A DNA stretch of 64,000 nt from Ascidiella aspersa. Lineage: Eukaryota. This document shows positions 18,034 to 42,137 of the stretch, one piece after another; position 1 is the stretch's first letter; every line of letters starts with the position of its first letter. The stretch covers positions 26,164,001 through 26,228,000 of the forward strand of contig OZ004614.1 of assembly GCA_963924565.1 (NCBI GenBank), read 5' to 3'. Position numbers and translations under genes: made by a program. Under the pieces are notes generated by a model that saw nothing but the letters and a program-made list of their open reading frames with translations, searched no databases and was not told the origin of the DNA.

Positions 18034-18555
18034 ATGATCTCTCTGCTGTCCTTATTTTCCCGGCTCGTCAAAGGTGAACCCAGCAACCAAGAAACAACAA
18101 TGGAGCGCAGCTTTATCGCAATCAAGCCAGATGGCGTCCAACGTGGACTTGTTGGAAAGATCATTCAACGATTTGAAGAAAAAGGATTCAAACTTGTGGC
18201 CATGAAAATGCAAACGGCCAGTGTGGACCATTTGAAGCTCCACTACGCCGACCTTTCCAAGAAGCCGTTTTTCCCCGGTTTGGTGAGCTACATGGCTTCC
18301 GGGCCAGTGGTCGCGATGGTTTGGGAAGGTGAGGGCGTTGTTTTGACCGGCCGGAAAATGCTCGGTGAGACCAACCCCAAGGATTCTCAGCCGGGAACCA
18401 TCAGGGGCGACTTCTGCGTCCAAGTGGGCCGCAACATCTGCCATGGTTCCGATTCGGTCGAGTCGGCCAACAAAGAAATCGCGCTCTGGTTCACCGAGCA
18501 GGAATTGAGCAACTACAAAAGCTGCCAGGAATCTTGGGTTTACGAGGGAAACTAA
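18034..18555 (+). CDS. NME: Nucleoside diphosphate kinase (NME1/2-type, group I), intronless; in-frame ATGs at 18034 and 18100
   Basis: [48 protein letters not shown], and the active-site motif NICHGSDS. Confidence 0.97.
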
Positions 18556-18893
18556 GTCCCACCGTTTTAACGCCAGCATATCGTTATTCACAAAGTTATG
18601 TTAGGTAAATTTTGCGAATTTCTCTCTACTAAAATAATCGTGCTGTTGTTGTTATATTTTATTTGTGTTTCAAAGCAAGCATAAACCTGTACTGCTATAG
18701 TTCACGATTTATCATTTTCTTATAAATTCAAAGTTGTCTATCACTTTATTGTGCTTTTTTGAAAGAAATTAATGCAGGGTTTTTGAATATGTTATCAGTG
18801 CAGTATTTTAAAAGTAAATTAACCTTGATGTCAACACCAGAACAGTTAATAATGGTTAATGGGATATTATGTTTTCAGGCCAGGGTTGAAAAA

Positions 18894-19538
18894 ATGAGCT
18901 GCCTAAAATTAGGATTACAACTGAAAGTTAGCAAATCTTTACTTAACAATATCCACCATCGAATTTTGCACTCCAGTTGTTGTCAACTGCAGCATAAATC
19001 AGAAAAACAATTACCCAAAGCAGATAACAGCAATTTCAAGCAGTTTTACCGATGCCCTTCCATAATCCCCATCAGAGCTTTGTCGAAAATGAAGCTCTAC
19101 CAAACTGCGTTCCTCGTCATTGCGACGCCAATACTTTACGTCAGCAGCCCGTTAGCATTGGACTACATTCCCCTGGAAGAAGCGAACGCGTTCGCATTGG
19201 CCGGAAGTTTTGCAACAGCCACATTGTTTTACTTCGCTTATGTTACTCGGAGGCTTGTGGGCAGTATGTGGTTGAACGAGGTCGATGACACAGTTAAGGT
19301 TGCCTACCTTACATTCTGGGCACAACGAAAAGACGTAATTCTGCCACTTAAGTCGATTAAACTTATGGACAACCCGGAGCAAAACTACGTGAAGCCGTTG
19401 GTGAAACTAAATCTAAACGATACAGACGAGTTTTACTTTTTAAGCCTTCGCTACGGCCAGATAACTGAATCGAGGGCTTTCAAAAAAGTGTTTGGGAAAG
19501 TTGCACTTGATCAATTAAAAGTATTGGGAAAGAAATGA
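18894..19538 (+). CDS. TMEM186: TMEM186-like mitochondrial membrane protein, intronless
   Basis: Basic presequence-like N-terminus, FYRCPSI..RALSKMKLYQT, two hydrophobic helices, RRLVGSMWLN..VKVAYLTFWAQRKD and FLSLRYGQI. The ATG at 18894 follows a ttttcAG acceptor at 18877-78. Confidence 0.82.
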   Translation: MSCLKLGLQLKVSKSLLNNIHHRILHSSCCQLQHKSEKQLPKADNSNFKQFYRCPSIIPIRALSKMKLYQTAFLVIATPILYVSSPLALDYIPLEEANAFALAGSFATATLFYFAYVTRRLVGSMWLNEVDDTVKVAYLTFWAQRKDVILPLKSIKLMDNPEQNYVKPLVKLNLNDTDEFYFLSLRYGQITESRAFKKVFGKVALDQLKVLGKK

Positions 19539-20119
19539 ATCCATCTCGAACTTACGAAAATATTCAATACTTATTTTCTTCAGTTATTCACTAAACCTTC
19601 ATATTTACCGCAATATATTACACGTGTTTAACTGGTCTTGGAAAAATCGAAACTGTAAAATGTAGGACCCGAAAAATGTTACATATTTAAATTAACATAG
19701 TTTTCGTTTCAAATCTTGAGTTTTCAATAAAAATGAGTGTTTTTATTATATTATGTTTTAGTGGGTCTTAAATTATGAGGTCAGTTAGAAAGAATAAGGA
19801 GTATGCGAAATATTTTAATTCCCTGATAGTTTTTAGTAGAGGAGCCCATCCGCCCAGTATTTTCTTGTTATTTGCAAAGTGTGGCGCGCAGTTGAAAAAG
19901 AACCACTTTTTTGTTAATATTTGTTCCTACTAGCCTAGAAATGCGTTTTTTCGCCGTCCCGAATACATTCAAGCAAACAAACCAACTGGTGTGATCTGTT
20001 TCCCATTTTACGAATTGGACAAAACGCAGGTAGCACAAAAACGAACTTTCAAACTAAATACACTTTTCAATAAAGCAATCGTAATGGCAGTAGTTTGTAG
20101 CAGCATTGCGAGGTAAATA

Positions 20120-23100
20120 TCAGTTTAAAGTTTCACTTTCCTCGGCCACAAGTGACGTCACATTGTTGCCAGGGTCCGGTTGGTCAGGATTCTCAGCAGT
20201 TTCTTCACAATCACCAGCATCAACATCATTGAGGGATGGGCTTTTCGTGATACTTGTACAAACTGTGTCAGCCTCTGCTGGAGGGTTGCCATTAGTAACG
20301 CTACTGACGTCACCGATCTGGTGGTCGTTCCGCATGAGTTGCTTCGCGTCTTGGCCGTCTTGAGCGTTGTCGTCTAAACTTTGGTCGTTTGCTAGCAAAT
20401 CACCAACAACCTTCTCCCCTTCCACGCTTACATCGTTAACCTCCTGCACTGATGTGTCCATGCTCTCCAGCGAAGCGTCCAGGTCCACAGGGGCCGGGGT
20501 ACGTTCGACCCCCTTCCGGGGCCTCCCCCCACGCCCTCGCTTGCCCCCTCTGCCCCTGGTGCTCCGGATACCGAGGAGTGCTTTGAGTTGTTTGCGTCGC
20601 CTCCTTAAGAAGTCGGGGTCGGCGTGAGTACAGCGCGAGCAAGCCCACACACCTGCGCGGGGGATTATCAGTTAAATCGAGTTTTTGTGCAGGCTTATTG
20701 ATTGACCGAGGCGACACGTGGCCATAAATACCTTTGAAAGTGAAACACGCAGATTTAAATCGTAAATCATGGCTGAAATTTTTATATCAATTTGGTATTG
20801 GGTCAATCGAGATACTATCCTATTATCGGATGAGTACCGATACCACCCTATTATCGGATGAGTACCGATACCACCCTATTATCGGATGAGTACCGATACT
20901 ATTACTTGTTATCAGATATCGGCTCCAGCCCGATAATATTGGACATCCCGACTTCTACCATGAAACTATAAAAAGTGATCGACACATAAAAGTGACCGAC
21001 ACTTAATAGTGACGTCACAAACCTGAAGGAATGGCGCGAAGGCTGACGCAGAAAGTGTGGTATCCTCGATCGCACCGGTCGCAGAACATCATGAGATCTT
21101 CTCTGTGTGGGAGACTACAGATTGTGCAAGTCTTGCACTCCATGCACTGCCAGTTGTACGTCAGCATCACCGACACAAGCTCGTCAGACATCTCAAGACA
21201 CGAAGGGTGACCTGGGGTAGAGGTCAGGGGTCATAGGTCGCGACGTGATACGGTAATCAGCATTATATCAGTGATTTAAACCTGTGGGCTGTTTGAGATG
21301 GGTTGGTCGCTAACCACAATAGTGATTGGAGTTATTTAGACTGGTGTGAACAAGATTTTTGTCACACGAAGACATGGTTCATATTTATTTAATTCAAACT
21401 TATTTATATATGTTTTGCCTGGTGCTTAGTTAACTTTAAGCTCACATAAATTTAGGGAATAGAATTGAATTACAAAAGCTTTGCTGTTGTTTGGTCGCTT
21501 GGTTTTTAGGAGAAACACTGGTCTCAATAAATCAAACTCTCGCACGCTTGTGGAAGTCAAAATGCCTAAATCTTAATTGTTAAATGACTTGACTTAAGTC
21601 ATGACTCATAAGGTGATGACCGGAGGGCGTGAGTTCGAACCTTTTTTTCTAGCATGGCCTTACACTATCAGCTTGAATAGGCGGACTAGTTCATTAAACC
21701 TTTCTGATAGCATCCGGTGTAGCATATACTAAGTAACAAGTGAAACAGGAATAATACAAAAGTACAATGTAATCAAAGTTTTGTTTTCTGAAACCATAAA
21801 GGTAAAAAGGTCAATAAAACCCAGTGATTATCCAGGGCCTTACTTAAAGCTAACTTTGAATTGATTTGTGTGATTTAGTGTAAAGTAGTGAAATAACGAA
21901 CCGTGGTTGTCGCATTGCGAACATTTGATCAAGTCCTCGGCCACATCTTTCTTGTTGCTCGTCTCATCTTTCCCGCAGATCCCGCACACAGGATTAAGAG
22001 GTGTCTGCGAACCACATAACCAGTTTTGTTAAACTTGTAAACCAATCATTTTGATAAGACTTAAGTCACAGTCAATTCACTTGTAAAATAACTTTAGTTT
22101 AAGGCAATTCGTTTGTAAAACTTAAATCAATTTTTTTGAATAAATAACAAGTCCTTGCCATAAAAAACGTTGGTCATTACAAAACTTCACTTAGTACTCA
22201 TGGAAAAACGAAACTACAAGATTCTTTATGAAATATACACAGCTATATGAATATACACAACAATACATTTTACTGCTGGATAAGCCTTAACATTTTTCCT
22301 CGTCCAACTAAAATATTCGAAAACGAGATTTTAATTTGAAGGCTATCTGGCGCATACGAAAAGTTGTTGCGTGAATCTAGGCAAACTAATTTAAACCAAA
22401 ATGCAACTTTGTCGCTCCGAATTGCAATTAGGATTTATTCCACGAAGATTAATTTTAAACCTTTCTAAACAAGAAACAAATTTCACTTCTTTAATAAAGT
22501 GCAGTCACGAAACCGAACAACATCAAAACCTCATGGTTTCAATTCTTTCTTATTTTAACAACTGCAGTTTGGTTTAGTGACACACTAGTGACGTAATAAT
22601 ATTACGTGAGTGAGGATGGTGACGTCATAGTTAGAGTAAGACCCAACCTACCACGTCAGCGACTTCGGCGTCAGCGTTAGATTCTTCGTCCGAATGATGT
22701 GACGTCATCGATACGTCATTGTCGGCGTTTACGGTAGCCAAGGTAACCACGGTTTGGCGAGGAGATGCTGAAAGTATTTTTTTGGAGTTTAAAACTTTAT
22801 AAGTTGAGCAGTTTGACAGGAAATTTACACGAACAACACGAAATAACCAGTGTATTCTGTAGTGAGGATATCAAGCCCATACAGAAGTAGGAAGCATTTT
22901 GAACGTATTAAATAAATATTTATAAGATACAATATATTCGAAACGTCCACAAAATGATACCTACTTCTGTATGGGATTTGATATTCATTCTATGTCTAAC
23001 TATAACCTCCAGTCTTTATCTTAAGATTTGTTCGACACCTTCAAAATGCTACCAACTTTACACATAGGTAAAATTAGTTTGAAACTAAAATATTTCATTT

Positions 23101-26100
23101 AATAGTTAGGATATAGAAATAGATCAACCCACCACATTTGTCTTTGTGTTTCCCCGATGCAACCGATTTAATGCTTCTTGGAGCGGATGACATCGTCGTC
23201 ACCGAGTCCGCTTCCTTCAAAAAATATTTAAAATCAGGTCAAATTTGTTGAGTCACTTAAACTTGTAAAGTTGTAAGCCTTCATGGTTTATAAAGTACTC
23301 TGCTCACAAAGTTACTTTCAATGTTAAAACTTGGCTGAAATTTAACATACATGCATTTTTTGAAATAAAAACAAGAAACATAAATCTAATTTCGTTCGAC
23401 CACAAACAATTGCAAGAAATCGCTTTTAAAGCCATAAACTCTTGCTTAGAAAGGTCGCATTTTAAAACCTTATCTGCTAATTATTCTGCAAAACACTTTT
23501 TCATAGTGTACCAACAACTAACGTTTGTTATATTAAAGCCAACAAGCTCGATATGTTACAACTTTTTACTTACCGAGTCAGCCTCTGAACCTGAACTTTC
23601 CACCTCAATGTTGGGTTCTGCTGTATGAGGTGGTCCGTACAGCGAAGTGTTGAGAGGGAGGTACATCAGGTCGTCCTTTGTGTAGCTGGAAGCAGAAACA
23701 ACAGTTAACGAAAAAAAATTCTATCTTTTAATAGAAATAAAAAAAAAGAAAAAAAAATAGGAGTGGCTTTATCCCATTACAATAAATAATGTAATTGTCT
23801 GATCAGAAGTTCATTTAACCTTTTGTAGTATTCTTGGAACTGTCCTGGGATCAGTGTGCATGGGTACAGACTCGGTCTAGTAAGCTCTGGATCCAACTTC
23901 CGCACTTTGTGCTTCGGATATTGCAAAACCTGTAACAAAACAAAACACTATTGTGCGCAGGTAAATGTTAGATTACTTACACCAACAAACCGTCATAACC
24001 AAGTGCTGAGACTTATATGGCCTAATTAAATATGCTATGCAAAGTGAAATATATTAAACTATAATCACATTGAGAGTCTCAGATTAAAATAGGATTCTAT
24101 ATTCTATTCGCATATAAAGCTGATGGTGCCATTATACACTTATTTCTCCTTACATCTTATAAAATTAACCTGCTTTGATCATATGAGAAAACAAAAAAAT
24201 ACAGCTGTTATATAAAGTCATTGATATTATTAGTGTCCCAGGCTTGGTGATATCATTTTACACACATTGAGTTGGCGAAAATATTTAACAGGGTTATATA
24301 TGTCATGTGTACTTTAGTGACTTGTTCCCAAACAGATGGAGCAACATTTTATCTGCTTGCTTAAAGTGGCACTCACATTTAGACTTGGACAAATAGAATT
24401 ATTTTAGCTTTATTTAAATTAGATTAGAAATAAAATTAGAGCATTCAAGTTTTTCAAATTAGATTAGAATTAGAATGACCGAATTCTTAAAACAACGAAT
24501 TAAAATGAAATTTAAACTAGAATTACAATTAATTATTTAAAATCAAAATCGCAAATTATTCTAATAAAAGGTGAATGGTAAATATTTGTTTGCTAATTTT
24601 TATACGCTTTAGCATATGCTATTAAAAATGCTGTTGGACAAATAGCATATTTGGTAAAACACAAAATGATTATAACTAGAACTAAAACACACTTGTAAGC
24701 AATTCAGAAATTAGATCAGAATTAGCCGCATTTTGCTCTAATTCATTGTATTGGAAAACTAGAATTATCTAGTTGTCAAAGTTAGCTCACATTGGTTGTC
24801 ATGTCGTAGTAGACGGAATATTCCTCTTTTCTCTGTCGATTCAAACTTGCATTATAGAAAGCTGCTTGACGCATTGCCTTCTTCAGGTGTCCTGGCAGCT
24901 GTGACTTTTCAACGACCGTCGACTGAAAAACACAAAACTAAATGTACAACAGATCGGATGTCCGATATAATGCGATACATGATGCCAAGTGTTACTATCA
25001 AGACTTGTGTCATACTTATCTTTGTCACTCCGCAGCCAAATCAACATAGAAATTTTAGTCATTATTAGTGATACAATCTTAAAATGCGAATTTATCAAAT
25101 AACCAGTGCTAAACCGATGAAGGACAACTTATAGTGGCAATGGCCTGTCAAACATATATTAAACTTTATCAATGATACAGGCATTCAATTCCTTTCCAGA
25201 AAAAAAACACTAGGTATCCTATGTTTTATTATTTACTACTTTGATTTACCCCGCTGATAGAAAATCAAACATTCAGGAAAAAGTTGACAAAATTAAAAAT
25301 AATATATGTAAAACTGCAATCGACACATCTGCGCCACCACTGTTATAGACAAAGTCATAAGAAATCCAGGTAGTCACAAATTCCTCTGCACCCCCACGAT
25401 GGGAACTTAGGATCCTACCTGTGCATATTGTTTGTAGTTGTTCTTCAGCTTTTGCTTTTCTCTTTCCTGCATTACTTGGTGATATTCACGGAACTTTTCC
25501 GGGTATTCTTTGGCCATCATGTCACAAACATCGGAGCTCTTCAAAGCTGTTAGACCTTCAATTTTAAAGAGGTGTTTGTGAAACTTAAATGAACTTTTCA
25601 GTTTATATACCTATATTTATTAAACTCCTTTTTTGCATGTTAACTTAACTTGATACTAAATAAAAACATTTTTTTGGCAAAAAAATAGGAAATTTGTTTG
25701 TTTTTCAGGAAAAGCAAACATATCATATCTTTATTGGTGGGAATGGAAACAGTGTTAGACACACACTGCACTATTTGATATTGAATCAAACATTGTCGCA
25801 ATATTGAGCAAAACATTAACCAGTCAACAATTTAAACTGACCTAAAGTAACCTGAACCTCACTAATCACATGACTCGACAAAAGGTGATTGACCTCTGCA
25901 GGATCAAGCTTGCGTCGTTGAATTTCTAAACAAAGTTTTAGTTTTAAACCAAGTAAAACTTTGATTAAATACTGAAATGAATATTGTGTAATTTGTGGGA
26001 TGGATAACAACCAAAACATATATATACATTTAAAAATTAATTACTATAGCAGTGATTTCAAACCTTTTATGCGTAGCAACCCAAATAACAAATATAAGTT

Positions 26101-27008
26101 TAACAGCAAATTTTTAGCATGTATTCCTTTACTAAACTTTTTACATAAATCCAAATTTAAGTGACATGAGCGATGTCTTCGTATTGCCTCCCAACTTTTT
26201 TAAATATTGGATACATTTTTATCAGAATCATTTAAAATAAATTTAATCATGTGAACCACTGCATTCTGCGACCCAACCAAACTAAATGTCCTCACAAATT
26301 TGTGTTGAGAAAAACTGTATTGTACAATAGCAACAATGGATAGAAACATAAAAAATGTGTCAAAGACCAATCATGTCAAAATCAACTTATGAATGGATAC
26401 CTGGGTATTTCCTTTTAAATGAAGTGATGCTAAGAAAAGTGCTAACTTGTTCTTGCAACATGTAGTAATCGCCAGAACTATCAGTCGGCCATTGGTATTC
26501 AACCAGGTTTTCCGCACTGATAGCTGAAAATCTATCAAAAAATGCTGATTATTAAAATCGGTTTTTCAAAAATATTTTTTTTTTATTTAATGACCACATT
26601 TTTAATACTGACAAACTTTAAATCCATTTTTGTAAAAAAACTTAATTAAATAAACAAAAATGTTACCCAAAAAATTTACCAGAAATAACCTTATTTTCAG
26701 CATATACTATGCCTTGTAGTGTATTTATACACTTACATGTTTTGTTGCAGACAGATCGGGTCAATTATTCTTCCTGTAACACTGAGTCCAAGTCCGGGTG
26801 CAATTTTTATTCCGTTGGTTTTGTTCTGCTTTACCTTTGCGTCTTTTTCCACATTGTCACTCAGTTCTGTGTTGGAAATTTGAGTCAGAATCGATGAAAG
26901 AATATCTTCAACCTCTGCATCGTTGGAATTATTCCGAGCGAGATTAACAGTCGGTTCAGATGACTGATTGTTGTTTGAAGTTGCCTGACTGCATTCAGTT
27001 TCCGACAT
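20120..27008 (-). CDS. PHF10: PHD finger protein 10 (BAF45A, PBAF subunit), about 11 exons
   Basis: SAY region: [33 protein letters not shown] and ISEVQVTLG|LTALKSSDV. Double PHD finger: [17 protein letters not shown]|[37 protein letters not shown]|VWACSRC. Confidence 0.93.
20812..20950 (+). repeat. Three copies of the same 28-bp unit family plus the TIR ggacatccc, in a PHF10 intron
   Basis: cctattatcggatgagtaccgatac occurs three times. Confidence 0.85.
22855..23012. repeat. Foldback/MITE family with long inverted arms. Other copies at about 790-950, 5640-5690, 11340-11425, 35160-35335, 38140-38210, 38650-38780 and 50345-50440.
   Basis: Recurrent arm ctacctacttctgtatgggctttgatattcattcta..ctacaacctcca, found in both orientations and often as an inverted pair. 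Confidence 0.8.
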
Positions 27009-27422
27009 TATCGCCTTTGATTACTTAAAAAATGTTAAACAGCCACCATTTAATGTTAATGTTTTCACTGTGATGTAATTAAACATGTATATAAGCAATT
27101 GTATAATTTTACACAAATCAAAATAAATTTGATAATTCCAAAATAGTAAAAAGTAACACCTTGTACAATGACCAGAAGAAAATATTCATACAGTGTCACA
27201 AATAAATCATGTATTATTGCACAAATATGGAAAGTTCACTTTCAATTTAAATATATGAATCACATAACATTTTTACTCACAAATTTAACTGCATAAAAGC
27301 TACAGCATATTGCACAGTTGAACAATAAAAAGTTTCTTAAAAAAATCACAAAAACAACAAAATACAAACATGTTTACAGACATACGAGGAAGCAATGTTG
27401 ATTTAAAGTTGTCACAATAAAT

Positions 27423-28142
27423 TTATAGTTCATTATTTCTGATAAATCTGTTTCCTTCAGAATTCCTGCCAACGTAGGCATAGCGGAGTCGGCCCATCAA
27501 TACTTTCCTGTTGTTGTCATTATCTTCCGCAGTTTCTTGCGATGTTGGTGGCTCCATCGGTGAAGACCCAACCAGATTTTCATCGGCGTAGCTCAACAAA
27601 TTCCTCTCCAAGTTTGTAACGGGTTTAAAATCCAGGAATTTTAGGTTAGGAAGGGAGTTTGCCACTTGGCAACGATAGCGCTTGTATTGCTCCAGTGTAC
27701 ACGAGGTTTCTAACAGATTGCTGGGACAAGCTTTGTTTCCAAGAAGGCTGAGGTACGAAAGCAAGGGGAAACTAGCGGAAATCTTCTCCAAAAGCAGCGA
27801 TAAATCTTCCAGCTGATTATTATTTAAAGTTAAAGTTTGAAGGGAGGTCAGCTTTGGGAATATTGACGTGTCGCATATAGCGTTGTTGTCTGCATTGAGC
27901 TCCTTTAAATTCTTGAAAACCTTCAACTCCGCCAAGCAGGAAAGGTTGTTATGGCTGATGTTGAGTCGCACAATTTCTTCAGGGTGTTTTTTCAAGAAAC
28001 CTGGAATAGATTCTGCGTCGTTTCCTGAATATGAACAATCGGCAAAGTTCCACGAAAATTCTTCCATCTCGGAATTGGAATTGCTCATTTCGTTTGCGTT
28101 GTATTCTGTGCGATCAAATATGAACGGTTTTGGTCGCAGCAT
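27423..28142 (-). CDS. LRMDA: Leucine-rich melanocyte differentiation-associated protein (C10orf11-like), intronless
   Basis: LRRs, YLSLLGNKACP, YKRYRC..LPNLKFLD (LRRcap), and the diagnostic C-terminus RYAYVGRNSEGNRFIRNNEL. Confidence 0.92.
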   Translation of the reverse strand: MLRPKPFIFDRTEYNANEMSNSNSEMEEFSWNFADCSYSGNDAESIPGFLKKHPEEIVRLNISHNNLSCLAELKVFKNLKELNADNNAICDTSIFPKLTSLQTLTLNNNQLEDLSLLLEKISASFPLLSYLSLLGNKACPSNLLETSCTLEQYKRYRCQVANSLPNLKFLDFKPVTNLERNLLSYADENLVGSSPMEPPTSQETAEDNDNNRKVLMGRLRYAYVGRNSEGNRFIRNNEL

Positions 28143-29342
28143 TAAAGAGATATAAGAAAAATATTCGCAACTATTTTATCCCGCTACATTACTCCAATGT
28201 AAGAGAGTCAGTAGCAACCCAAGAAAAGATTTTCGTGTAGCAGTTTATAAGTTTTATGCCGATGCAAAATAGTCACGTGAAAAACAAAAACTATTTACAT
28301 AAACTTTACAAAATAAATCCACATTCGAAAACAATAAATGAAACATTTTTGTGGCAATAATAGAAAATGTTATTCGTCCAAAGCAGATTTATGCAAATAC
28401 GAACAAATAAATTTGCCTATTTTACGTCACGCTTCAAAAGTTACGTCACAGGAGACACACAAGACGCGAAATGCGTAAAACCTTGGTTCGGTATCATGTT
28501 CAAGTGTTGTTAATTTATGTTTTAGTGAATGATAGAATATTATTCCTATTAATGTTTTGTTAAATAAACTTATTTTTAAAAGCTTCAAGTTAATTTTTTA
28601 AAGATTTTTTAGCATCGTAAGTGCATACCGTAATTATTTGGGAAGAGGCTCTTAACTCGAAAAAAGAAGATGTTTAATTTGAAATATATTTACTAATGCT
28701 TGTTTTACCACCAAGAAGAGCGGGGTAAATAGCCAACAGGCACTTAACTAAGGCTATTTATCCGGGGCCGAAAAATTAATCAATGAATTTTATTTAATTA
28801 TTAATTGAAAAATAAATCACAAAAATATACCAAAGCTTGGAAATTTCACTTAATAGCTCACAACCCAAACCAAATCTATGTATAATTCAAATTCGAAACT
28901 GAAAGCCATGGCAGACTCACTGAATCTGACATTGAATGATGCAAGCAGGGCAGGCTAGAAAAACAAGCTTGCAGAGGGGTTCGGACTCACGACCTTCTGT
29001 CATACCAAGACTGTCGCTCTACCAACTGGGCTACACGGGCTCAGAGAGGTTTAGAAAACTCAAATTAGAATCTTTGGATTTTGCGCAGGGTAATGCTATG
29101 CAGCTTAAAATTGCGCTGCTGTAATAAGATTACTGCAAACATAAAAAATTCACAACTCTAGTTGAAAATTTTCGCAGGTGTAATAAAGTTATTTCTAAAT
29201 TTGCATGGCAGTAAAGAAGTACTATATCGAAAGATGTTAGCCATCTATGTAAATTACCACTTTCTTATCAATTTTCTTGCTCAGCAACGTTTCCTTTTTT
29301 GTTGCAGTTTAAAGTGACATTTTTGCTGCTTTACATTAGAAG
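28143..29342. promoter_or_regulatory. Putative bidirectional promoter between LRMDA(-PHF10) and ALG8(-TBC1D20)
   Basis: Head-to-head genes; two ttacgtcac motifs (about 28422 and 28442) and gtcacgtga (about 28272). A possible ALG8 5'UTR intron runs from gtaagt at 28617 to ttgcAG at 29307. Confidence 0.45.
28903..29040 (-). mobile_element. tRNA-derived SINE (tRNA-like head plus body)
   Basis: The reverse complement GCCCGTGTAGCCCAGTTGGTAGAGC...GGTCGTGAGTCCGAACC has A and B boxes but broken stems. The body (ctagcctg..tgcttg..gattcagtgagtctgccatggct) is shared with the copy at about 11672-11780. Confidence 0.75.
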
Positions 29343-30971: not shown

Positions 30972-31055
30972 TAAAAATGCTGTAATTCCATGTTTCTTTA
31001 TTACTATGCATACCTTTCATGTTCAAAGTTTGCATTATATTATCTTGGTGCTAAG

Positions 31056-31432
31056 TAGGGATGTCCATATCCGGTACACAATGCCAAATGTTAATATCAG
31101 TATTCATCTGATACCACTGTGGTACCAGTGCTAATCCGATTCCAAACTTATAAAGGGTTTAAGCCATGGTTTACGATCCAACTAGTGTCTTTTATCTTTT
31201 ACTACAAAAAATAAAAATCAATAATTTAATAACAATCAAAGAGAACTGAGTTCCTAATGCAAAAACAAATTTGGCTTAACACTAGAAAACATTAAATTTT
31301 ATATTTTACCTAAAAATATATATAAATATTGTGGACAATAGTAATGCTGTCATTTGGTATCGGATCAGGTATTAATACTTTCTCCAAAATAATCGAACAA
31401 TCAGAAAAAACCTAGAATATTGGACATCCTTG
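31056..31432. mobile_element. hAT-type MITE between ALG8 and TBC1D20
   Basis: TIRs tagggatgtcc...ggacatccttg with degenerate 8-bp flanks gtgctaag / gtgttcag. Confidence 0.65.
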
Positions 31433-31533
31433 GTGTTCAGCGCTAAAAACGTTTTTTTACCTAAAAAAATTCTCACACGATTTTCCTTCATTACAGGTTT
31501 AAGTTTTGTAACTTGTTCAAAGTAGAATGAAAG

Positions 31534-32667
31534 ATGAACCCAAGCAAGGACAAATTAAGACTGAAGTTAAATGAAATAAACAAAGCGCTCCTGAAGGACC
31601 CGGCGGACATAGTTACGCTTCGACGCCTTGCTATTGCTCCCGGTGGGCTTGTGTGCAGTGAGGCGCGAAGAAGGGTATGGCCCCACCTATTGGATGTTTC
31701 TAAAAATACCGTGGCGCATCCCAAAGATGTGAGAAGCCACAAAGAGTACCGGCAAGTGGTTTTGGACGTTGAACGCTCAGGCAAAAGAATGCCAGAAAAT
31801 TGTTCGAAAGACGAGAAAGTGGCTCTGGAAGAACGTTTGACTGACCTCATCCTCTCTGTGTTAACGCTGCACCCCCAGCTTTGTTATTACCAAGGTTATC
31901 ATGACATTTGCATCACGTTTATGCTTGTATGTGAAGAGGAATCATCACTTGCAATGCTGGAGAGGTTGTCCACCCACCACCTTCGCGACTTCATGGACCC
32001 CACAATGGACAGTACCACCCACATTTTAAACTACCTTATTCCCATTTTAAAACGCGCCAATCCAAAACTGGTTGATTACCTCGAAAAAGCCGAAGTTGGC
32101 ACCGTGTTTGCGCTAAGCTGGTTGATAACCTGGTACAGCTACGTTGTACCTGAGCAAAAGGACATTGAACGCTTGTATGACTTTTTCCTTTCCTGTCATC
32201 CGCTAATGCCGGTGTATTTTGCCGCACAAATTGTCCTCGCCAACTCCGACCAAATTCTTCACGGCGAGTGCGACATGCCACGAGTTTATTCGCTTCTGCT
32301 AAAGTTGGCGAGAACTCCTGACCTTCCGTTGGAAATGCTCATTCAAAAAGCGTCAGACTTTTACATTCAATTCCCTCCTTCATCGTTGGCAAATGAGGCC
32401 GCCGATTACTACAAGAAGAACCTCGCCATTTCGACATTCTGCGACTTTGCGCTGGTTGCGAAACACGAAGCGCCAGACGTTGTGCTCGAAAGACTGGGCT
32501 TGGTTGAGAAAAAAGTAGCTGAAGTCGTTGAGAAGCCATCGGTGGATTCAAGATGGAAGCAGTCGACCAAGACGGTTGCTATCGCACTAGGTGGCGCTGT
32601 TGGGGCTGCGCTCATTGCAATCGGGGGAAAAGCGCTAGAATGGGCTCCTGAACTTTTTGGCTTCTAG
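31534..32667 (+). CDS. TBC1D20: TBC1 domain family member 20 (Rab1/Rab2 GAP), intronless
   Basis: GGLV..ARRRVWPHLL, QVVLDVERS (R finger), LCYYQGYHDI (Q finger), THHLRDFMDPTMD, FALSWLITW, RLYDFFLSCHPLMPVY, and a C-terminal hydrophobic anchor. Confidence 0.95.
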   Translation: MNPSKDKLRLKLNEINKALLKDPADIVTLRRLAIAPGGLVCSEARRRVWPHLLDVSKNTVAHPKDVRSHKEYRQVVLDVERSGKRMPENCSKDEKVALEERLTDLILSVLTLHPQLCYYQGYHDICITFMLVCEEESSLAMLERLSTHHLRDFMDPTMDSTTHILNYLIPILKRANPKLVDYLEKAEVGTVFALSWLITWYSYVVPEQKDIERLYDFFLSCHPLMPVYFAAQIVLANSDQILHGECDMPRVYSLLLKLARTPDLPLEMLIQKASDFYIQFPPSSLANEAADYYKKNLAISTFCDFALVAKHEAPDVVLERLGLVEKKVAEVVEKPSVDSRWKQSTKTVAIALGGAVGAALIAIGGKALEWAPELFGF

Positions 32668-34350: not shown

Positions 34351-37300
34351 ATGCCTGAACACTCGCTACGGGCAGGAAAAAGAACGACAACTCCTCTAAA
34401 AACTGAATCTTCAACCTCGATACTTAACCTGGTTTATCAAGTGGCAATATTACGTTCCATCATCAAGTGGCTTGTTCGTGTTGTGACCGGAACTTGTCAA
34501 TTGCAAAGAATTATTCAGAAGCACAAAGATGGTGTTTGTACTGTGAAAGTCGGTAAGTTTTAAATTGCATTTAAATTCCTGTGGCATAATTGTGAGCTAC
34601 AGGTAATAATTTGATGCGCATTTTCAAAAAGAAACAAGCTTTTGTTTTTTTGTGTATATTAAATAATATACATATTTTATAATAGACACACTATAGCTGA
34701 TTTACAAGTGAGTAATTTTTAAAAAATAGATATATTTTTTAAATTGGTTTGATCTAGTTTTATAAATATTAAAATGCCAGTGCCTTCACTTCACTTCTTG
34801 TGTTGCTTGGACTATAAAAAATAATAAATGTATTTTTCAACAATTTGCTTTTTTTGATAATTAGGCATTTCCACCGTCTATAGGCTAGAATGAATATTAA
34901 AGCCTAAATAGTAATAAAGTAGAATGTTTTCTTTTTACGTTTTATCGCTTTTATCTTCACTTGATTTGTACACTGATGATCGCATGAGTTATTGCTGAAA
35001 CGTCTGTAAATTGCGAAATGTCGATTTTATCGAATATTATGGATTTGATATTTTTATTGAAAGTAGAATGAATGTAGCATTTTAAACTTTTTAAATATAG
35101 CTTTATTCATTTTCATTATATTTAAGTTGTTGTTTATATGATCACTTTGTGTTTATTAATATTCGAAGCATTTAAAATGTTATCTACTTCTATTATAAGG
35201 TTTGTCATTCTTACTATGTCTAACTACAACCTCCAGCCATTATTTTTAGAGTTATTTGAAACGTTAACAAAATGTTACCTACTTCTGTATGGGCTTTGAT
35301 ATTCATTCTCTGCCTAACTACAACCTGCAATCATTGTGCTTTAAAATAAAGTCATCGCTAAATTTACAGAGGAATGTCTGAGGAGATCAAAGCGTGTTGA
35401 ACTGCGACGAATCATCGAAGAGGAACCAAGTGACATCGAAGCAGCCGTCAAGCAAATAATGCAAATCAAACACATCGTGGAGGAAACAAATCCAAAGTGC
35501 GACGTTTTCCCAACTTAGTTAACAAATTTTCAATAGTTTAAAATATTTGCCAAAATAATGCAATTATTTATGTACCAATAATTGTTTTTTAACTGAGTTA
35601 GGAAAATTTTGCTAAGTTAGGAACAAAAATCATTTCAAAATCAGTGAAATGTAAATAGTTTTATTTTAGAAAAGTTGGTATGTGCATAAATTTATGTTTG
35701 ATGAAATTATCAAAATTCTAATGTGTTTTTTTTTTGCCAAATGCATATAAGCCTATAATGTTTGTTTTTTAATTATTTACACCCAAGGTTTTCTCTAACT
35801 CTGCGTACTTGCTTGGAGCAAATTTACGGTTATGAGTCGCTCTTTGGAGATGTTGAGGCACTGCGAAGTGAAAAGTACGATTGTAGCAACAAGAATCACG
35901 AAAAAATGCTTTTAAAGGTGGGACAATAGCGAGTGCTCTGGTCTGGTTAATATTTTTACATTTTTCAAGAAGTTATTTCACATTCACCTGTATGTTTTGT
36001 TGGGATTGGTTACAAATTTATTTATTCCCAATCATTAAATAGTTTGCACCAGTATGGCAGAATGTCGGTTATTTAGCAACTATGTTAGCTGAAGAATCAG
36101 TCAAAAAAACACAAAACTTATTGCTAAAAAAGTTGTGAAGCGTGTTGTTTAGTGCAAAAAATGCATTGCTGGTTTATGAAGCGTTTATTTTTTTAAATCC
36201 ACTCAAAGCCGATGACTGTTTTCTTTATTATTTATTTGCATTCAAAATTATTAAAATATGTTAACTCTCAGATAACTATTTCTTGATTATCGTCTTTGTA
36301 CATCGTCTAAAGCTGACAAGGTTTATACATTCCTTCGAAAACACAGCGTTTAAATCAAGGAGAGCAGAAAATTATAGGGTGCAAAAAAATGCGGACAATT
36401 TTGTCACCAGAAAGCTGGAAAGATTATGCCAGACTGGGTGCACATTGTTTTATAAGTAGGGCGATTATTTTTTGACTTAAAAAAATAAGAAATTTTAACT
36501 TGAAAAATTAAAATTTTGACCTGTTAGAAATAAATTGATTTAAACAACATTTTTTTTGTTTGAAGTACTGTATTTGTATCTTGGCGTCGCCAACCACACA
36601 TTTTTGATGTTTAACCGACTACAAACCGAACGCAATTATCAGTTATTTTTTCGGGTAAATGCTGTTGAAAATACTTGTTGATATTTTTGTTATTTCAAAA
36701 AGACAAACAGCTATGAAATTGCTGAATTAGAAAAATGTGGTGTAAACAGTTGAAATACAACAAAAAAATAATTGCATTGTCCAAATCAGAGATGCCTTGG
36801 TGGTTCATTCTGCTCGCGTATACTGTATTTTGCTCTCATGAAGATATAATACTGTTAAAATGTCATTGGATATAAATCAAAACTAATTTTTTTTGATAAA
36901 ATTGAAATAAAAAAAAAACAGAAGATAATTTTAAAAAGCTGACTACAGTTTTTTGTTTAATTTTGTAAACGATTTATGTGCATTTTTATTCCAGTCTGAG
37001 TTGAAATAATTTTGACAAATTTTGACTTTCACATATGCTATTTCACGACAAGTCAAAAAATAATCACCCTAGTTATAAGCATAATAACAAACTTGCCCCT
37101 CGAACACCACTGTACCCTCTTAATAATGTCACAAGGTTTGACGCATCTTTAATTTTAGCTTCTAATTAATCCCAACAGGCAGGCGCTTCCTGTCTTTATG
37201 ATGAAGTAAGGTTTTTCCAGGCCACATTAAATGAGTCATATAAGGTCTAAGAATCCTTAAAGTACTTCCTTGCTTTTATTTGCCTGCTAATTTTAACAGG

Positions 37301-40300
37301 TTTATTTTATTTAACTGATATTTTTAGCTCAAATTGTAAATTAAAATTAAAACTAAATGTTTTAATTTTTTTAATCCCCACAAAGGCTTAATTTCATGAG
37401 GTTAATGTGTTTAAATTATCCTTTTTAATAATGAATATCTGATTATTTGCGGCCATCAGTAGTTCAACTTTTTTTATTAAAGCCTTTTATTTTATGCAAA
37501 CTGTTTGGTAATAATCTTGTACTTTGGAGCCATTAGATCAAAGAGCATTGTTAACATTTTTTGTGCTCCTTGGCCAGGTTTTATTGTTGAAACATCCGTG
37601 TTTTTTCCAAAACTAAATTTCATTTGGAGTGATAAAACACTTGATTAAATGGAACGATGTTAGAGAGTTCATTCAATTAATATCGATTTATTTAAAAAAA
37701 AATGTGTTTTGGAAAACAGCACAATTTCTAAAGTAAAAAGCGTTTTTTTAGGAAATATAGATAAAAGCCTGTTAAACCACAATATTCAACCCAATTAAAA
37801 TTTACCTCACACTTTTGTGACATGATTTACATTATTGTTTCTTTTTATGAAATATATATAAATGCCTGTTAAAACCAATTAAAATATATTAAAATTTTAC
37901 TTGATTCATAATTGATTTATTTGAATCAAGGTAAACTGATGATGCCATTCATTTACTTGGAGAAATATATATTTATTTCTTTCTTTTTGCTTAGCTTTGG
38001 CAACTTTTGCGTCCCGATGAACCTCTGGAAAGCAGAGTTTCAAAACAATGGTGTAATATTGGATTCCAGGTAACCAACATGTACAAGTATTTTAATATAA
38101 AGTTGGACTGTTAGTGTATGAAAATAAATAAAATTTCGATAATGGCTGGAGGTTGTACAGTAAAAATATCAAATCTTATACAGAAGCAAGCAGCATTTTA
38201 AACGTTTTAAATATATATATATATTTTTTTTGACATTGTGAAAAGGTACTTTTTTTCTGTATTATTATCAGATGAAGCATGGATGTGCGAAAGCTCGTCG
38301 AGAGCTCAATACAGTTTGTCTTTATAGAGTATAATCTTGTCTTTTTATTGTATATCCTGATAAAAACACAATCGGATCGGATCCAGTAGTTTTTACTAGT
38401 TTACCAGAGTTTGTTTTATGTTAGGGTGACGACCCGAAGACCGACTTCCGAGGTATGGGACTCCTCGGGCTCTCTAACCTTGTTTATTTTGCTGAGAATC
38501 ATCCCCAACTTGCCACACAAACCCTTCAGCACTCCTTCCACCCTAAACACGGGTAAGAACGCATGATTTAAGCCCAGAATTAACGATGTATACCATTCTG
38601 TGTCACAATTCTTTTGTTTCAATAGTCTGCGTCTAATAGTGTGGTTGATAATAGCTGGAGGTTGTAGTTAGACGTTGAATGAATATTAAAGCCCATTTAG
38701 AAGTAGGATTTTAAACGTTTCAAGTAAATCTTTATTCATTTGTTCACTTTTAGTAGTATGTTGGAAATGAATAAAGAGATATTTGAAAGGTTCAAAATGC
38801 ACCCAAAAATGTTGTCACGTTGTTTGTCTACACATTTCCACCACACACTTAAGCAGATATTATTTTTCAGTCGCATTTTGCACTAATACTTGGAACTTTG
38901 CGCATCACAATTGGCAGGAATTAATTTTGTTGAGTCATTTTGAAAACAGTAACTGAACGGCGAGACGCGATGCTTAATAGGAAAAAAATGAAGTGTGACT
39001 CATAACTTTGTAAAACAATTTATATTGAATAGGTTTGGTTTAAAATGCCGTTATTTCGAGCAATTTACGAATCTCTGTTATGTGCCTTTAATTGTAATGA
39101 GTTGATAAATGACTTTATAGTTTTTTTTAAAATGCATTATACTGTATAGTCGAGTAGGGTTTCCTATGGAATTTCTCATTAGACGTGATGGTAAATTTTC
39201 GAGAATTGAGAAGACCTCTTCTATTAATCAGATCCTTCCCTTTCAGTTCGCCAGAAGGGTTGTTATTATTAATATTATGAATTAATAATGATATCGATTT
39301 TTAAATTCACTCAGCGTCCACACACAGCCTGCTGACCAATTATTTTTATGGCTAGCCTAAAGTCAAATTTTGTCTCAATCGTTTGGTAAAATTTGTTAAA
39401 ATTTGTAAATCACACGTTAGGTAAAATTTGTTATTAAAATAAGTTTGTAGTCTGCTGACTAATACGTCTTTGGTCGTACAACGTATTATTATAAAAAAAA
39501 TCATTTTATAGTCAAATTAGTTTACACCTGCAATTTAGGTGCATTGTTAAGCCGTTACCGCGTTTGTATTGTCTTCGCTACTAACTTAAGTTTTTAGTTT
39601 AGCTCAGGGTCACCTAACTCTTTTCATAAAGGTCTGGATAACTGTAAGGATTGGCGATCGCGTTAGCAAATTTTATGTCGAACTTAAACTTTATGTTTGT
39701 TAAATGAAGAATAACATAAAAAAGTATTTACAAAAAACTTTATAAGTTCTTGCGAAATTGTCGGTGGTGATTCGCAATAGCATATTTCCGGTTCCAAATA
39801 TGCGATCTCTGTTTTGATTTCGTGCCATTCGAATTATCCTGAATGCAACTAGATATGTACGGTAATTGACATTTTACTCCCAAACCCGATTTGTTCTACG
39901 AACAGTATCGCTATCTGTTACCAAACGACACCATTACCTTGTTGAAATAGGCATATAGATGGAAATTCAATTTGCTTTGGCATTAGAATGTTTAGATACA
40001 CCGAGTTGTTGACCTACTATTTAAATATAAACTCACCTTTTAAGGTAGAATCACTTCGTTGAATTGAAGTTTAAGCTGAAATTTTTATTTTTACTTGGTA
40101 TTGGACCAACCAGGTACCGCACTAATACTGGTGCTACCTCTTCAGAACGGGTATCAGCTCCGAACTGACGTTATCAGTCATTCCTAAATGTAACTATCGG
40201 TTTTCAAAGCTAACTAAAACTCGCATAAAACTTGTTGGAGAGCTGTTGGTCAGCCCTAGACTTCAAAGTATAACTAGCAGTTGTAGTTTCTGTTCAGCGT

Positions 40301-42137
40301 TTTATTTTAACCCTGTATTCGGCCAATGAAACCCTGCTTAAATGTATACAGAAATATTTTACAGCTATAAGCAGCTTGATGATTTGAAAACGTGTTTGGA
40401 AATGTGATTTGGCTTCACGTATTTAAAAGTTACACATACCAGTCGTACACATGCGTATAATGTGCTTGGTACAGTGATTCTCATAGTGGGATCCATTAGG
40501 CAATTTTTTTGGTTGTGCGATTAAAAAGCTTTTCAGTCGTACAACCAACCAAAAGTAGATAAATTGAAATAGGCGAAGGAAATGAACCCGACTAGTCATT
40601 TCTTTTATCACGTGTTTTACTCAAGCGAATATGTTGTGATGTTTTCCCCTTCCAAGTTATTTTAAATACCAGGAACGCGAAACAAGTTAAAGCTGAAAGT
40701 TACTTTATTACTTCGGTACCTGATCGTCACCGATACCAACCAAGTATCGGACTAGTATCGATACTGTCACACTTGGCATCAAGTATCGGCTCCGATCCTA
40801 TTATCGGACATTCCTAAATGTAACTATCGGCTTTCAAGGCCGACTAATAAGTCGTATACAACATTAACGTGTCGCATAAAATTTGTTGGAGAGCTGTTGG
40901 TCATCCCTAGACTGCTAAGACTTTAAATCCGTAAAAACCGAAGTTCCATATACTCTAGCAAATCATTCACTTGCTTATAGCTGTAAACGTATTTAAAAGT
41001 TCCACATAACAGTCGTACACATGTGTGTAATGTGTCAGCTACCATCTGCTGGTGATTCTCACACTGGGGACCATTAAGTAATTTTGTGCGTTTCGCAAAA
41101 GAAAAGTTTTTTTTTTGTCTTAAACCAACCAAAAATAGGTAAATGGAATTAGGCGAAGCAATTGAACCCTACTACAAAGTTTATCACGTATTTTGATAGG
41201 AAATTGTAACACTATATATATATATATATATAATATATATATATGGATTTTATTATGTTTTTTGTTCGTTTAACATCGATATTTATGTCTTGCAAGTGAC
41301 GGTGAATCATGAAAAAGTGAGTTGTGAACACGACTGGTCTGATTAACCTCGTGAGTGAGTGTAAATCTTTCGTGATGCAGGTATTCATATGCGATCGCCG
41401 GCATCAACATCACGAGCATGACTCACGAGCTCATGAGTGACGGAAGACTGAGATCTCACTTCTTCAACACAGTCATGGGGAGGCCTGACATGAAGCACTT
41501 CCACCAAGTATATTGTGAGTATCCTGCTACAAATACTAGCATTTGTGTGAGGTATTGCCTCGAAGTTGAAATTATCAGAGAACCTTATTTCAAACAAACA
41601 TTTATTTCTTCGTTTTAAATAGGGATGTCCGATAATATCGGATCGGAGCCGATAATACACAAGTGGCAGTATCGGTACTCGTCCGATATTGGGGTATCGC
41701 TGCCAATAACTAATTAATATATAAATTTCGCAATTTCATCTACTTAGCTTTTTAGCGTCGCAATTTCATCTATTTAGCTCGTTTCGTCATACTAATGACG
41801 TCATTTAGCTCGTTTCATCATACTAATGACGTAGTATGCATATTGCAAGAAACCTATTTTTAAAAGCTTTTCCCACTTTTTAAAATTACAAAACTAAATT
41901 GATTAGCTATTGAATCTGTGAGTTCTAAATTTTTGTCTTGATAAATATTCTTTTTCAAGCTAAATTAGCACCTTTAGTGTTTGTCTAGGTTACCTTTTCT
42001 ACGAGTTCGACAAGTTTTGGGTGAAATCGGAACCTGAAAACGTGATGGCCTTCAGCAAAGTAAGGTCCCAGTTCCTCAAAACGGTTCAAGATATTCTTAC
42101 TTTTGTGCCGTCTGCCAGGCTGGTGATCGAACATTGA
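34351..42137 (+). CDS. ELMOD2: ELMO domain-containing protein (ELMOD1/2-like ARF/ARL GAP), 7 exons from the ATG at 34351
   Basis: IKWLVRVVTGTCQLQRI, CLEQIYGYESLFGDVE, HEKMLLK|LWQLL..RVSKQWCNIGFQ|GDDPKTDFRGMGLLGL, G|YSYAIAGINIT, HFHQVY|CYLFYEFDKFW; stop TGA at 42135-37. Confidence 0.92.
36457..37071. mobile_element. hAT-like MITE in an ELMOD2 intron; a related end fragment lies at about 51060-51165
   Basis: TIRs tagggcgattatttttt..gac / gtcaaaaaataatcacccta; flanks tttataag / gttataag. Confidence 0.7.

Follow-up and report, generated by a model that had tools for sequence, protein, structure and literature searches.

ALG8 and TBC1D20 as a candidate spliced-leader operon in a compact gene cluster of the ascidian Ascidiella aspersa

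Introduction

Are closely spaced, same-strand genes of an ascidian transcribed together and resolved by spliced-leader (SL) trans-splicing, or does each of them have its own start site? About half of Ciona genes are leader trans-spliced as monocistronic genes. As Ciona and Oikopleura also have well-characterized leader-resolved operons, further operon candidates are expected in another ascidian. Correct operon calls matter for the annotation of the so far unannotated genome of Ascidiella aspersa, an ascidian related to Phallusia: gene-prediction programs are prone to merging genes of this kind or to misplacing their starts.

We addressed this question in a 64,000-nt stretch of contig OZ004614.1 (assembly GCA_963924565.1, positions 26,164,001 to 26,228,000), hereafter the window. 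The original prediction comprised three candidate SL-resolved operons (NME–TMEM186, LRMDA–PHF10 and ALG8–TBC1D20), the last one including, with less certainty, ELMOD2, with up to eight genes driven from two bidirectional promoters. The locus appears to be a compact housekeeping-gene cluster in which ALG8 and TBC1D20 form a two-gene operon and the other genes are arranged as described below, the ascidian using Ciona's 16-nt spliced leader; taken as a whole, we give this explanation an even chance of being right.

Results

Gene layout

The two members of all three pairs are same-strand neighbors, and five of the six genes (NME, TMEM186, the LRR gene, ALG8 and TBC1D20) are single open reading frames (Table 1). 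ORF coordinates and domain matches agree with the predicted gene identities and gap lengths, the LRMDA label being putative; the small LRR protein gave only generic LRR matches against PDB sequences.

Table 1. Features of the locus (positions in the window; gaps are intergenic intervals within the three pairs)
Feature	Coordinates	Strand	Remarks
Putative divergent promoter region 1	17319..18034		between minus-strand TFIIS/Med26-domain gene and NME
NME (nucleoside diphosphate kinase)	18035..18555	+	single ORF; Pfam NDK, E 1.1e-56
Gap 1, 338 nt	18556..18893	+	candidate acceptor AG 18877-78
TMEM70/TMEM186-family gene	18894..19538	+	single ORF; Pfam PF06979, E 6.3e-08
PHF10, multi-exon	20120..27008	-	exon 1 ~26733-27008, ATG 27008; PHD exons 21018-21191, 21843-21989
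Gap 2, 414 nt	27009..27422	-	candidate acceptor AG 27025-27024 (minus strand)
Small LRR protein gene (LRMDA-like, putative label)	27423..28142	-	single ORF; Pfam LRR_4, LRR_9
Divergent region 2	28143..29342		between LRR gene and ALG8; high-copy SINE-like repeat ~28935-29131
ALG8	29343..30971	+	single ORF; Pfam Alg6_Alg8, E 2.8e-161
Gap 3, 562 nt	30972..31533	+	diverged repeat ~31040-31450; candidate acceptor AG 31495-96; out-of-frame uATG 31527
TBC1D20	31534..32667	+	single ORF; Pfam RabGAP-TBC
ELMO-domain gene (ELMOD2-like), multi-exon	34351..42137	+	PF04727 match 38425-38604; first ORF 34351-34563

The minus-strand gene that bounds the first divergent region has its ATG near 17318 and a Med26/TFIIS domain in ORF 15523–16098 (Pfam). 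NME has two in-frame ATGs, at 18035 and 18100, the conserved part beginning at the latter, and its stop codon ends at 18555. The ORF of the TMEM70/TMEM186-family gene, for which a word search returned nothing, stays open in the 5′ direction (18759–19538) with in-frame ATGs at 18789, 18828 and 18852, so that its candidate acceptor could fall within coding sequence. The identity of PHF10 is backed by a PHD exon that matches PHD finger protein 10 at E 3e-25, versus 1e-14 for DPF3, among PDB sequences, as well as Pfam PHD. ALG8 gave a single match in a search of its own genome, of which it is the sole copy; TBC1D20 has no other close copy there and is 72% identical to Phallusia mammillata TBC1D20. 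The MITE predicted in gap 3 is indeed a repeat, with 14 partial and diverged matches elsewhere in the genome (67–81% identity); the repeat search reported no terminal inverted repeat, short terminal matches being visible by eye only.

Spliced leader genes

A search with the Ciona 16-nt leader as sole query retrieved 354 exact copies of the leader followed by a GT donor in the genome, versus none for the reversed control. These copies sit in 584-bp tandem arrays, and one of them has an Sm-like AUUUUUG downstream; no Rfam family matched the leader gene. The genome thus holds hundreds of gene copies of a leader identical to that of Ciona.

RNA coverage and conserved linkage of ALG8–TBC1D20

Stranded RNA-seq reads (276 reads placed, about 6% of one run) cover the LRMDA–PHF10 and ALG8–TBC1D20 junctions. 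Depths are given in 177-nt bins and correspond to a few reads, a dip in depth being in itself no finding. The unmatched part was shorter than 20 nt in about 13 of the 276 reads, and the unmatched read ends among those listed were all SINE-derived; neither a leader-bearing nor a dicistronic read was observed at either junction.

Gap 3 is covered in its entirety by short reads, on the sense strand only (depths 1.37, 3.87 and 2.42), so that where the ALG8 and TBC1D20 mRNA ends might abut, coverage is continuous at 177-nt resolution. The mean depth over coding sequence is about 2.7 for ALG8 (range 0–9.7) and 3.2–4.2 for TBC1D20, and variants seen in the gap RNA at 31083, 31114, 31125 and 31278 agree with DNA contigs spanning the locus. 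Depth is 0–1.4 across 30240–31124 and 2.4–4.2 beyond, which places a step-up near 31125; coverage of the gap is explained equally well if TBC1D20 transcription starts near 31.1 kb and its leader stays unspliced.

The linkage of the two genes extends to other tunicates. ALG8 and TBC1D20 are collinear, on the same strand and both intronless in metagenome contigs of another tunicate (L012 and L013; identity 58% and 64%), where their gap is about 2.8 kb and where none of the other genes of the window is detectable over the 15 kb of each contig. Homologues of both genes also lie on contigs of identical size in all six ENA assemblies, all in the tunicate clade, with contigs of at least 200 kb. In Clavelina, they are listed on differing contigs (28.8 Mb versus 14.2 Mb); the linkage is therefore not universal.

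Continuous sense RNA over the gap and conserved linkage give this pair real support, and ALG8–TBC1D20 is the likeliest operon of the three, a probable one in our assessment. It would most likely be an old two-gene operon. We infer co-transcription and trans-splicing at the candidate AGs: a promoter upstream of ALG8 would drive a single transcript across the two intronless genes, from which leader trans-splicing, at AG 31495–96 or close to it, would free the TBC1D20 mRNA and provide its cap.

The LRMDA–PHF10 pair

The situation is different for LRMDA–PHF10, which is not an abutting operon of the Ciona type, as RNA depth is 0.07 in 27231–27407, just past the LRMDA stop codon; a GU-rich stretch lies downstream of this stop (about 27370–27340). 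On the PHF10 side, depth falls from about 19–22 to 1.16 (the value in 27054–27230) within some 30 nt of AG 27025–24, and no cis-splice joint was reported among the reads at this edge, where depth is about 20. Such a sharp 5′ edge without a cis joint fits trans-splicing. With a depth of 18.7 in exon 1, against 1.7–8.4 for the LRR gene, PHF10 RNA is at least three times more abundant than that of its neighbor. We take the LRR gene mRNA to end near its stop codon, about 375 nt before the AG that marks the PHF10 5′ edge. PHF10 would accordingly either receive the leader on a transcript that starts within the gap or come second in a spaced operon; we consider an operon of any kind here to be possible but somewhat doubtful.

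Promoters in the gaps or in the divergent regions

The most serious alternative is that there are no operons at the locus, TMEM186, PHF10, TBC1D20 and ELMOD2 each having a weak promoter in the preceding gap, a short outron and monocistronic leader trans-splicing. In Ciona, non-operon outrons have a mean length of 438 bp and a peak at about 100 bp (Yokomori et al. 2016, PMC4691747), which contradicts the argument that the gaps leave little room for a separate promoter: as outrons peak at such a length, each gap can hold its own. Moreover, monocistronic genes commonly receive the SL, and gaps in true operons measure about 1 bp (PMC7986045). The lack of RNA just past the LRR gene stop, the step-up in depth within gap 3, the 2.8-kb spacing in the related species and the split of the pair in Clavelina also speak for this alternative. 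However, it accounts poorly for the conserved order and strand of ALG8–TBC1D20 amid differing flanking genes, and for the shared contig in six of six assemblies; in addition, CpG, CRE and E-box promoter marks were found in none of the three gaps (in gap 1, the CpG observed/expected ratio is 0.15 in 18751–19000), and the single-exon genes recall Ciona operons, which, according to Satou 2008 (PMC2760879), are enriched in single-exon genes, most of all at the 5′-most position. Nor does gap length decide against operons: URM1–CHERP, a published Ciona operon according to the same paper, is conserved in the A. aspersa genome with a CDS-to-CDS gap of 414 nt, so that gaps of this size are compatible with operons. 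All in all, we regard the absence of any operon as unlikely.

NME–TMEM186 is a candidate operon that may work like ALG8–TBC1D20, with chances that we put slightly below even.

Both divergent regions display a CpG observed/expected ratio of 1.5–1.8 together with CRE-like and E-box motifs: (i) in region 1, a CRE-like half-site at 17552, an E-box at 17992 and a ratio of 1.52 in 17501–17750; (ii) in region 2, CRE-like half-sites at 28424 and 28443 and an E-box at 28274. This restriction of promoter-like marks to two regions, the tight same-strand spacing, the single-exon genes, the AG before each ATG and the presence of leader genes all agree with the original prediction in full, namely three operons plus ELMOD2 in which two bidirectional promoters would drive up to eight genes. 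RNA from the LRR gene side, however, extends into the 28293–28469 bin, and depth is zero on both strands in 28470–28823; consequently, a single promoter may not serve both ALG8 and the LRR gene. Beyond the SINE-like repeat, where both strands are read at word depths in the tens of thousands, ALG8 RNA first appears in the bin containing 29308, the depth of which fits a 5′ edge at AG 29306–07. ELMOD2 membership finds no support either, the ELMO-domain gene lying 1683 nt from TBC1D20 and being undetected beside TBC1D20 in contig L013: it is unlikely to belong to the unit and most likely constitutes a separate gene. Given also the lack of abutment between the 3′ end of LRMDA and PHF10, the full prediction is very improbable.

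Candidate acceptor sites

The three predicted AGs are found where expected, 15, 15 and 37 nt before the downstream ATGs of TMEM186, PHF10 and TBC1D20, respectively, but their pyrimidine richness is not clearly beyond chance. The 18 nt upstream of AG 18877–78 contain nine pyrimidines, equal to the median for the window's 6491 AGs, and those upstream of the other two contain 12 (top 12%) and 13 (top 6%); 17% of the ATGs in the window have an AG 10–40 nt upstream with at least 12 pyrimidines out of 18. On their own, the candidate AGs are near chance. By comparison, AG 29306–07 before ALG8 is strong (14 of 18, top 2%), and the TBC1D20 ATG is preceded by strong acceptor-like sites in all three species seen. 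The idea that the AGs are chance occurrences or acceptors of cis-spliced 5′UTR introns, the downstream mRNAs being ordinarily capped, agrees with this background frequency, with the absence of a drop in RNA depth upstream of AG 31495–96 and with the TMEM186 ORF being open across its AG, but is highly improbable in view of the sharp PHF10 edge, the ALG8 edge and the strong acceptors before TBC1D20 in all three species.

Discussion

The candidate units resemble the SL operons of Ciona (Satou et al. 2006, PMC1488885; 2008, PMC2760879) in several respects: an identical 16-nt leader, same-strand neighbors, mostly two genes per unit, an excess of single-exon genes and the absence, as read from the sequence, of a canonical AATAAA from the 40 nt before the junction AG. 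They may differ from them in spacing: the arrangement that defines Ciona operons leaves less than 100 nt between genes, mostly 0–1. In Ciona operons, mRNA ends abut, intercistronic distances having a median of 1 bp and a cut-off of about 84 bp (PMC7986045), whereas abutment is excluded by RNA depth for LRMDA–PHF10; it is compatible with the RNA coverage of ALG8–TBC1D20, and the ALG8–TBC1D20 gap of the related species is far from the abutting type. The host itself differs from Ciona, its ALG8 being 54–55% identical to the Ciona protein.

The genes also share features with monocistronic SL genes of Ciona (PMC4691747), in that the acceptor precedes the ATG by some tens of nt and AT-rich sequence extends a few hundred nt upstream. 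Unlike the candidate operons, such genes have their own start site, and they would not explain the conserved collinearity of ALG8 and TBC1D20. This pair, collinear and intronless in distant tunicates despite a 2.8-kb spacer, thus lends itself well to testing whether abutment is obligatory in tunicate operons.

In C. elegans, operons of the SL2 type have their cistrons separated by about 100 nt or more. LRMDA–PHF10, as an operon, would similarly require an upstream poly(A) site, then a spacer, then an acceptor; unlike in C. elegans, the spacer, at about 375 nt, is long, and tunicates are not known to have a second leader specific to operons (PMC1488885, PMC7986045). It is conceivable, though rather improbable, that this lineage keeps operons with long, transposon-tolerant spacers (about 375 nt in LRMDA–PHF10; 0.5 kb here and 2.8 kb in the relative for ALG8–TBC1D20, which would be ancient across tunicate orders), a second, nematode-like operon architecture in chordates beside the abutting Ciona type.

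Gene layout and identities

Five of the six genes forming the three candidate operon pairs (NME–TMEM186 and ALG8–TBC1D20 on the plus strand, the LRR protein gene–PHF10 on the minus strand) are single open reading frames (ORFs), and the positions of these ORFs in the sequence confirmed the gaps announced in the original prediction, i.e. 338, 414 and 562 nt within the pairs and 1683 nt between TBC1D20 and ELMOD2, the proposed third cistron. They belong to a series of small housekeeping genes. PHF10 and ELMOD2 were searched by individual exons. The name PHF10 is borne out by the PHD exon, which matches PHD finger protein 10 with an E-value of 3e-25 versus 1e-14 for DPF3; the label LRMDA stays tentative, the matches of that gene being no more specific than the generic LRR fold. 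The word search for TMEM186 gave 525 candidates with common words, none of them at E ≤ 1e-5. ALG8 is the only copy, and TBC1D20 the only close copy, found by searching the 308.6-Mb genome against itself.

Positions of the genes of the candidate operons in the window
Feature	Position	Strand	Remarks
NME	ends 18555	+	Pfam NDK, E 1.1e-56
TMEM70/186-family ORF	proposed start 18894	+	three in-frame ATGs further upstream (18789–18894 stretch)
LRR protein gene	27423–28142	-	239 aa; generic LRR fold
PHF10 exon 1	ATG 27008	-	downstream of the LRR protein gene
ALG8	29343–30971	+	Pfam E 2.8e-161
TBC1D20	31534–32667	+	downstream of ALG8
ELMO-domain exon	38425–38604		ELMOD2

The 1.7-kb gap between TBC1D20 and ELMOD2 yielded no convincing ORF for a hidden gene. 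It contains a GC-richer patch (33630–33900), in which open frames on both strands are all at most 64 codons long and which may be a decayed fragment or a repeat. We regard membership of ELMOD2 in the ALG8 unit as unlikely.

Conservation of the ALG8–TBC1D20 pair in tunicates

The closest relatives of ALG8 are found in Clavelina (58% identity), Ciona savignyi (55%) and C. intestinalis (54%), and the top ALG8 matches included no fused gene model from another tunicate. TBC1D20 is 72% identical to its homologue in Phallusia mammillata, with which it groups in the tree (support 93/86). These results place the ascidian, whose own proteins are absent from the collection searched, close to Phallusia. 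Scanning JGI metagenome contigs with an alignment of tunicate TBC1D20 sequences retrieved L012 and L013, both from a single related tunicate, and a short contig, L014. L013 carries both genes as single ORFs (ALG8, 555 codons, 58% identical; TBC1D20, 64% identical) in the same order and on the same strand as in the window, about 2.8 kb apart, with a strong acceptor approximately 20 nt before the TBC1D20 ATG. The length of this spacer implies that any such operon need not have abutting cistrons. Note that a MITE-like element, whose inverted arms are long, occupies 4300–4760 of the L013 spacer and that the spacer in the window has likewise taken transposon insertions.

The LRR protein gene, PHF10, NME, TMEM186 and ELMOD2 were not detected on L012 and L013, which are 15-kb contigs, and a tblastn search of 745 ORF pieces from the window against the related contigs gave no match at E ≤ 1e-4 other than those of ALG8 and TBC1D20; at E ≤ 0.5, L013 gave 87 further rows of 10–46 residues each, the best with an E-value of 0.015. 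If the downstream gene depends on the upstream promoter, one expects a same-strand pair to be retained even where its neighbors are exchanged, as is the case for ALG8–TBC1D20. Furthermore, where ENA assemblies have contigs of 200 kb or more, the contig carrying the ALG8 homologue and the one carrying the TBC1D20 homologue are equal in length, in six assemblies out of six (204,680; 440,063; 523,949; 658,870; 676,852 and 1,196,267 nt); the TBC1D20 proteins from five of these assemblies form a tunicate clade apart from Ciona, Clavelina and Phallusia (support 96/96). In C. savignyi, the proximity of the UniProt accessions H2Z9N9 and H2Z9P5 is a weak hint of linkage. The two homologues listed for Clavelina are on different contigs (28.8 vs 14.2 Mb) and the genes are probably unlinked there.

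RNA across two of the intergenic gaps

As Satou 2006 (PMC1488885) describes them, Ciona operons are same-strand pairs in which the poly(A) site of the upstream gene lies directly at the acceptor of the downstream gene. If a candidate pair is such an operon, its CDS-to-CDS gap should therefore be the upstream 3'UTR, and the test is where the upstream mRNA ends. We placed reads from about 6% of X4, a stranded RNA-seq run, on the stretch 26700–32000 (276 reads, 198 of them only partly); the depths below correspond to a few reads per bin, and a dip by itself is not to be taken as a finding.

Depth goes from 9.7 to 0 along ALG8, averaging about 2.7; values in the ALG8–TBC1D20 gap are 1.37, 3.87 and 2.42, and those over TBC1D20 3.2–4.2, with no drop upstream of the candidate acceptor AG 31495–96. 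The RNA of ALG8, the gap and TBC1D20 is all on the sense strand, that of the nearby SINE-like repeat on both, and the variants carried by the reads at 31083, 31114, 31125 and 31278 agree with the DNA contigs across this locus. This profile fits an ALG8 3'UTR reaching the acceptor, i.e. an operon. A TBC1D20 transcript starting near 31.1 kb, with its leader unspliced, also fits, depth being 0–1.4 over 30240–31124 and 2.4–4.2 thereafter. Among the rows listed for X4 on 26700–32000, there were no piled-up read starts or ends, and those with unmatched ends belonged to the SINE only. Altogether, we think that ALG8–TBC1D20 is probably a real operon. ALG8 itself may be trans-spliced, as suggested by the strong AG 29306–07 (14 pyrimidines out of 18, top 2%) and by the depth of bin 29178–29354, 2.56, which is that expected from a depth of about 9.7 over just the 47 nt past this AG.

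On the minus strand, depth is 1.7–8.4 over the LRR protein gene, 0.07 just past its stop (27231–27407), 1.16 over 27054–27230 and 18.7 in the bin containing PHF10 exon 1. The value of 0.07 suggests that the mRNA of the LRR protein gene ends close to the stop, and argues against an abutting operon of the Ciona type. A TATAAA-like hexamer overlaps the stop codon; together with a GU-rich run around 27370–27340, it would fit an ordinary poly(A) site of this gene. The 5' edge of the PHF10 RNA is sharp and located at or near the candidate AG, with no cis-splice joint reported in X4, which fits trans-splicing of PHF10. An operon here is conceivable but rather doubtful, and would be of a spaced type.

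Acceptors, promoters and repeats

The AGs that the original prediction placed before the downstream ATGs are where it put them (18877–78, 27025–24 and 31495–96), but pyrimidine and AG counts across the window make them weak evidence by themselves. TBC1D20 has an out-of-frame upstream ATG at 31527, 7 nt before its start and 3' of the proposed acceptor; an AG nearer the start codon may thus be the true acceptor. For NME–TMEM186, the acceptor is mediocre and the TMEM186 ORF is open upstream; judged from such features, this putative operon has a little under an even chance of being real.

The two divergent regions, 17319–18034 and 28143–29342, have CpG observed/expected ratios of 1.5–1.8 and contain CRE-like half-sites (17552, 28424 and 28443) and E-boxes (17992 and 28274). 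In the three gaps, the ratio is 0.15–1.0, with no CRE-like half-site and no E-box, which, on a handful of CpGs, lends mild support to the view that the gaps would lack promoters of the divergent-region type. X4 shows no RNA on either strand over 28470–28823, so that a single bidirectional promoter for the LRR protein gene and ALG8 is not shown. That two bidirectional promoters feed all the genes seems very improbable.

The interval between these two genes harbors a very high-copy SINE-like repeat (28935–29131) with RNA-seq reads on both strands; summed word depth over 28824–29000 is about 36,000 (X1) and 81,000 (X2) versus a baseline of about 44–109. The repeat looks tRNA-derived by eye; an ARAGORN scan of the whole window, SINE included, found no tRNA gene. 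Elsewhere, the window (64 kb) contains 18 copies of the palindrome TGACGTCA versus about 1 expected (a rough figure from base composition): at 20153, 20305, 21010, 22620 and 22700, in the 3' part of PHF10 and partly in coding exons, and at 13 further sites.

The spliced leader in this genome

The Ciona leader, as given in PMC1488885, followed by GT has 354 exact occurrences genome-wide, most of which lie in 584-bp tandem arrays; the reversed control has none. One gene copy comprises the leader, a GT donor and, about 70 nt downstream, an Sm-like AUUUUUG, indicating that the leader trans-splicing machinery is present; Rfam gave no match at one such locus. On C3, a contig of the same genome, arrays of spliced-leader RNA genes with the exact 16-nt leader occupy 5.2–5.45 Mb, with spacers of about 8 kb every few units.

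Leader relics before intronless genes, a footprint of retroposition, were discounted: the window has three matches at up to 3 mismatches versus 2.32 expected, none at a gene start. At 17325–17340, 14 of 16 positions match the leader; this site is a few bases away from where the minus-strand TFIIS/Med26-domain gene starts and lies on the strand opposite to that gene. Over the whole window, such matches are at chance level.

Comparison with known Ciona operons

According to PMC1488885, Ciona operons lack DNA between the cistrons and usually also a canonical AATAAA. Satou 2008 (PMC2760879) gives 1,310 candidate operons defined by an intergenic distance below 100 bp, many single-exon genes, above all in the 5'-most position, and the example DTL–URM1–CHERP. 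SLOPPR (PMC7986045) puts the median intercistronic distance at 1 bp and the cut-off at about 84 bp, and reports that many of the genes receiving the leader are monocistronic. The argument that gaps of 338–562 nt leave little room for a separate promoter does not hold against the non-operon outrons of Yokomori 2016 (PMC4691747), with a mean of 438 bp and a peak near 100 bp. The operon proposal is a reasonable annotation hypothesis of an already known kind and no surprise; the one question that deserves follow-up is whether long, transposon-filled spacers can persist in tunicate operons.

As a yardstick, we used URM1–CHERP, a pair conserved in this genome on contig C2. There, one strand of 26144000–26161500 carries an intronless CDP-alcohol phosphatidyltransferase gene (cardiolipin-synthase-like), URM1 and CHERP, their coding sequences being 241 and 414 nt apart; URM1–CHERP is common to this arrangement and to the Ciona operon as described, whereas the upstream partner differs. 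URM1 consists of a single ORF, and CHERP has a strong acceptor about 55 nt 5' of its ATG. With 414 nt between the URM1 stop and the CHERP ATG, the gap sizes of our candidate pairs are normal for a pair that is operonic in Ciona.
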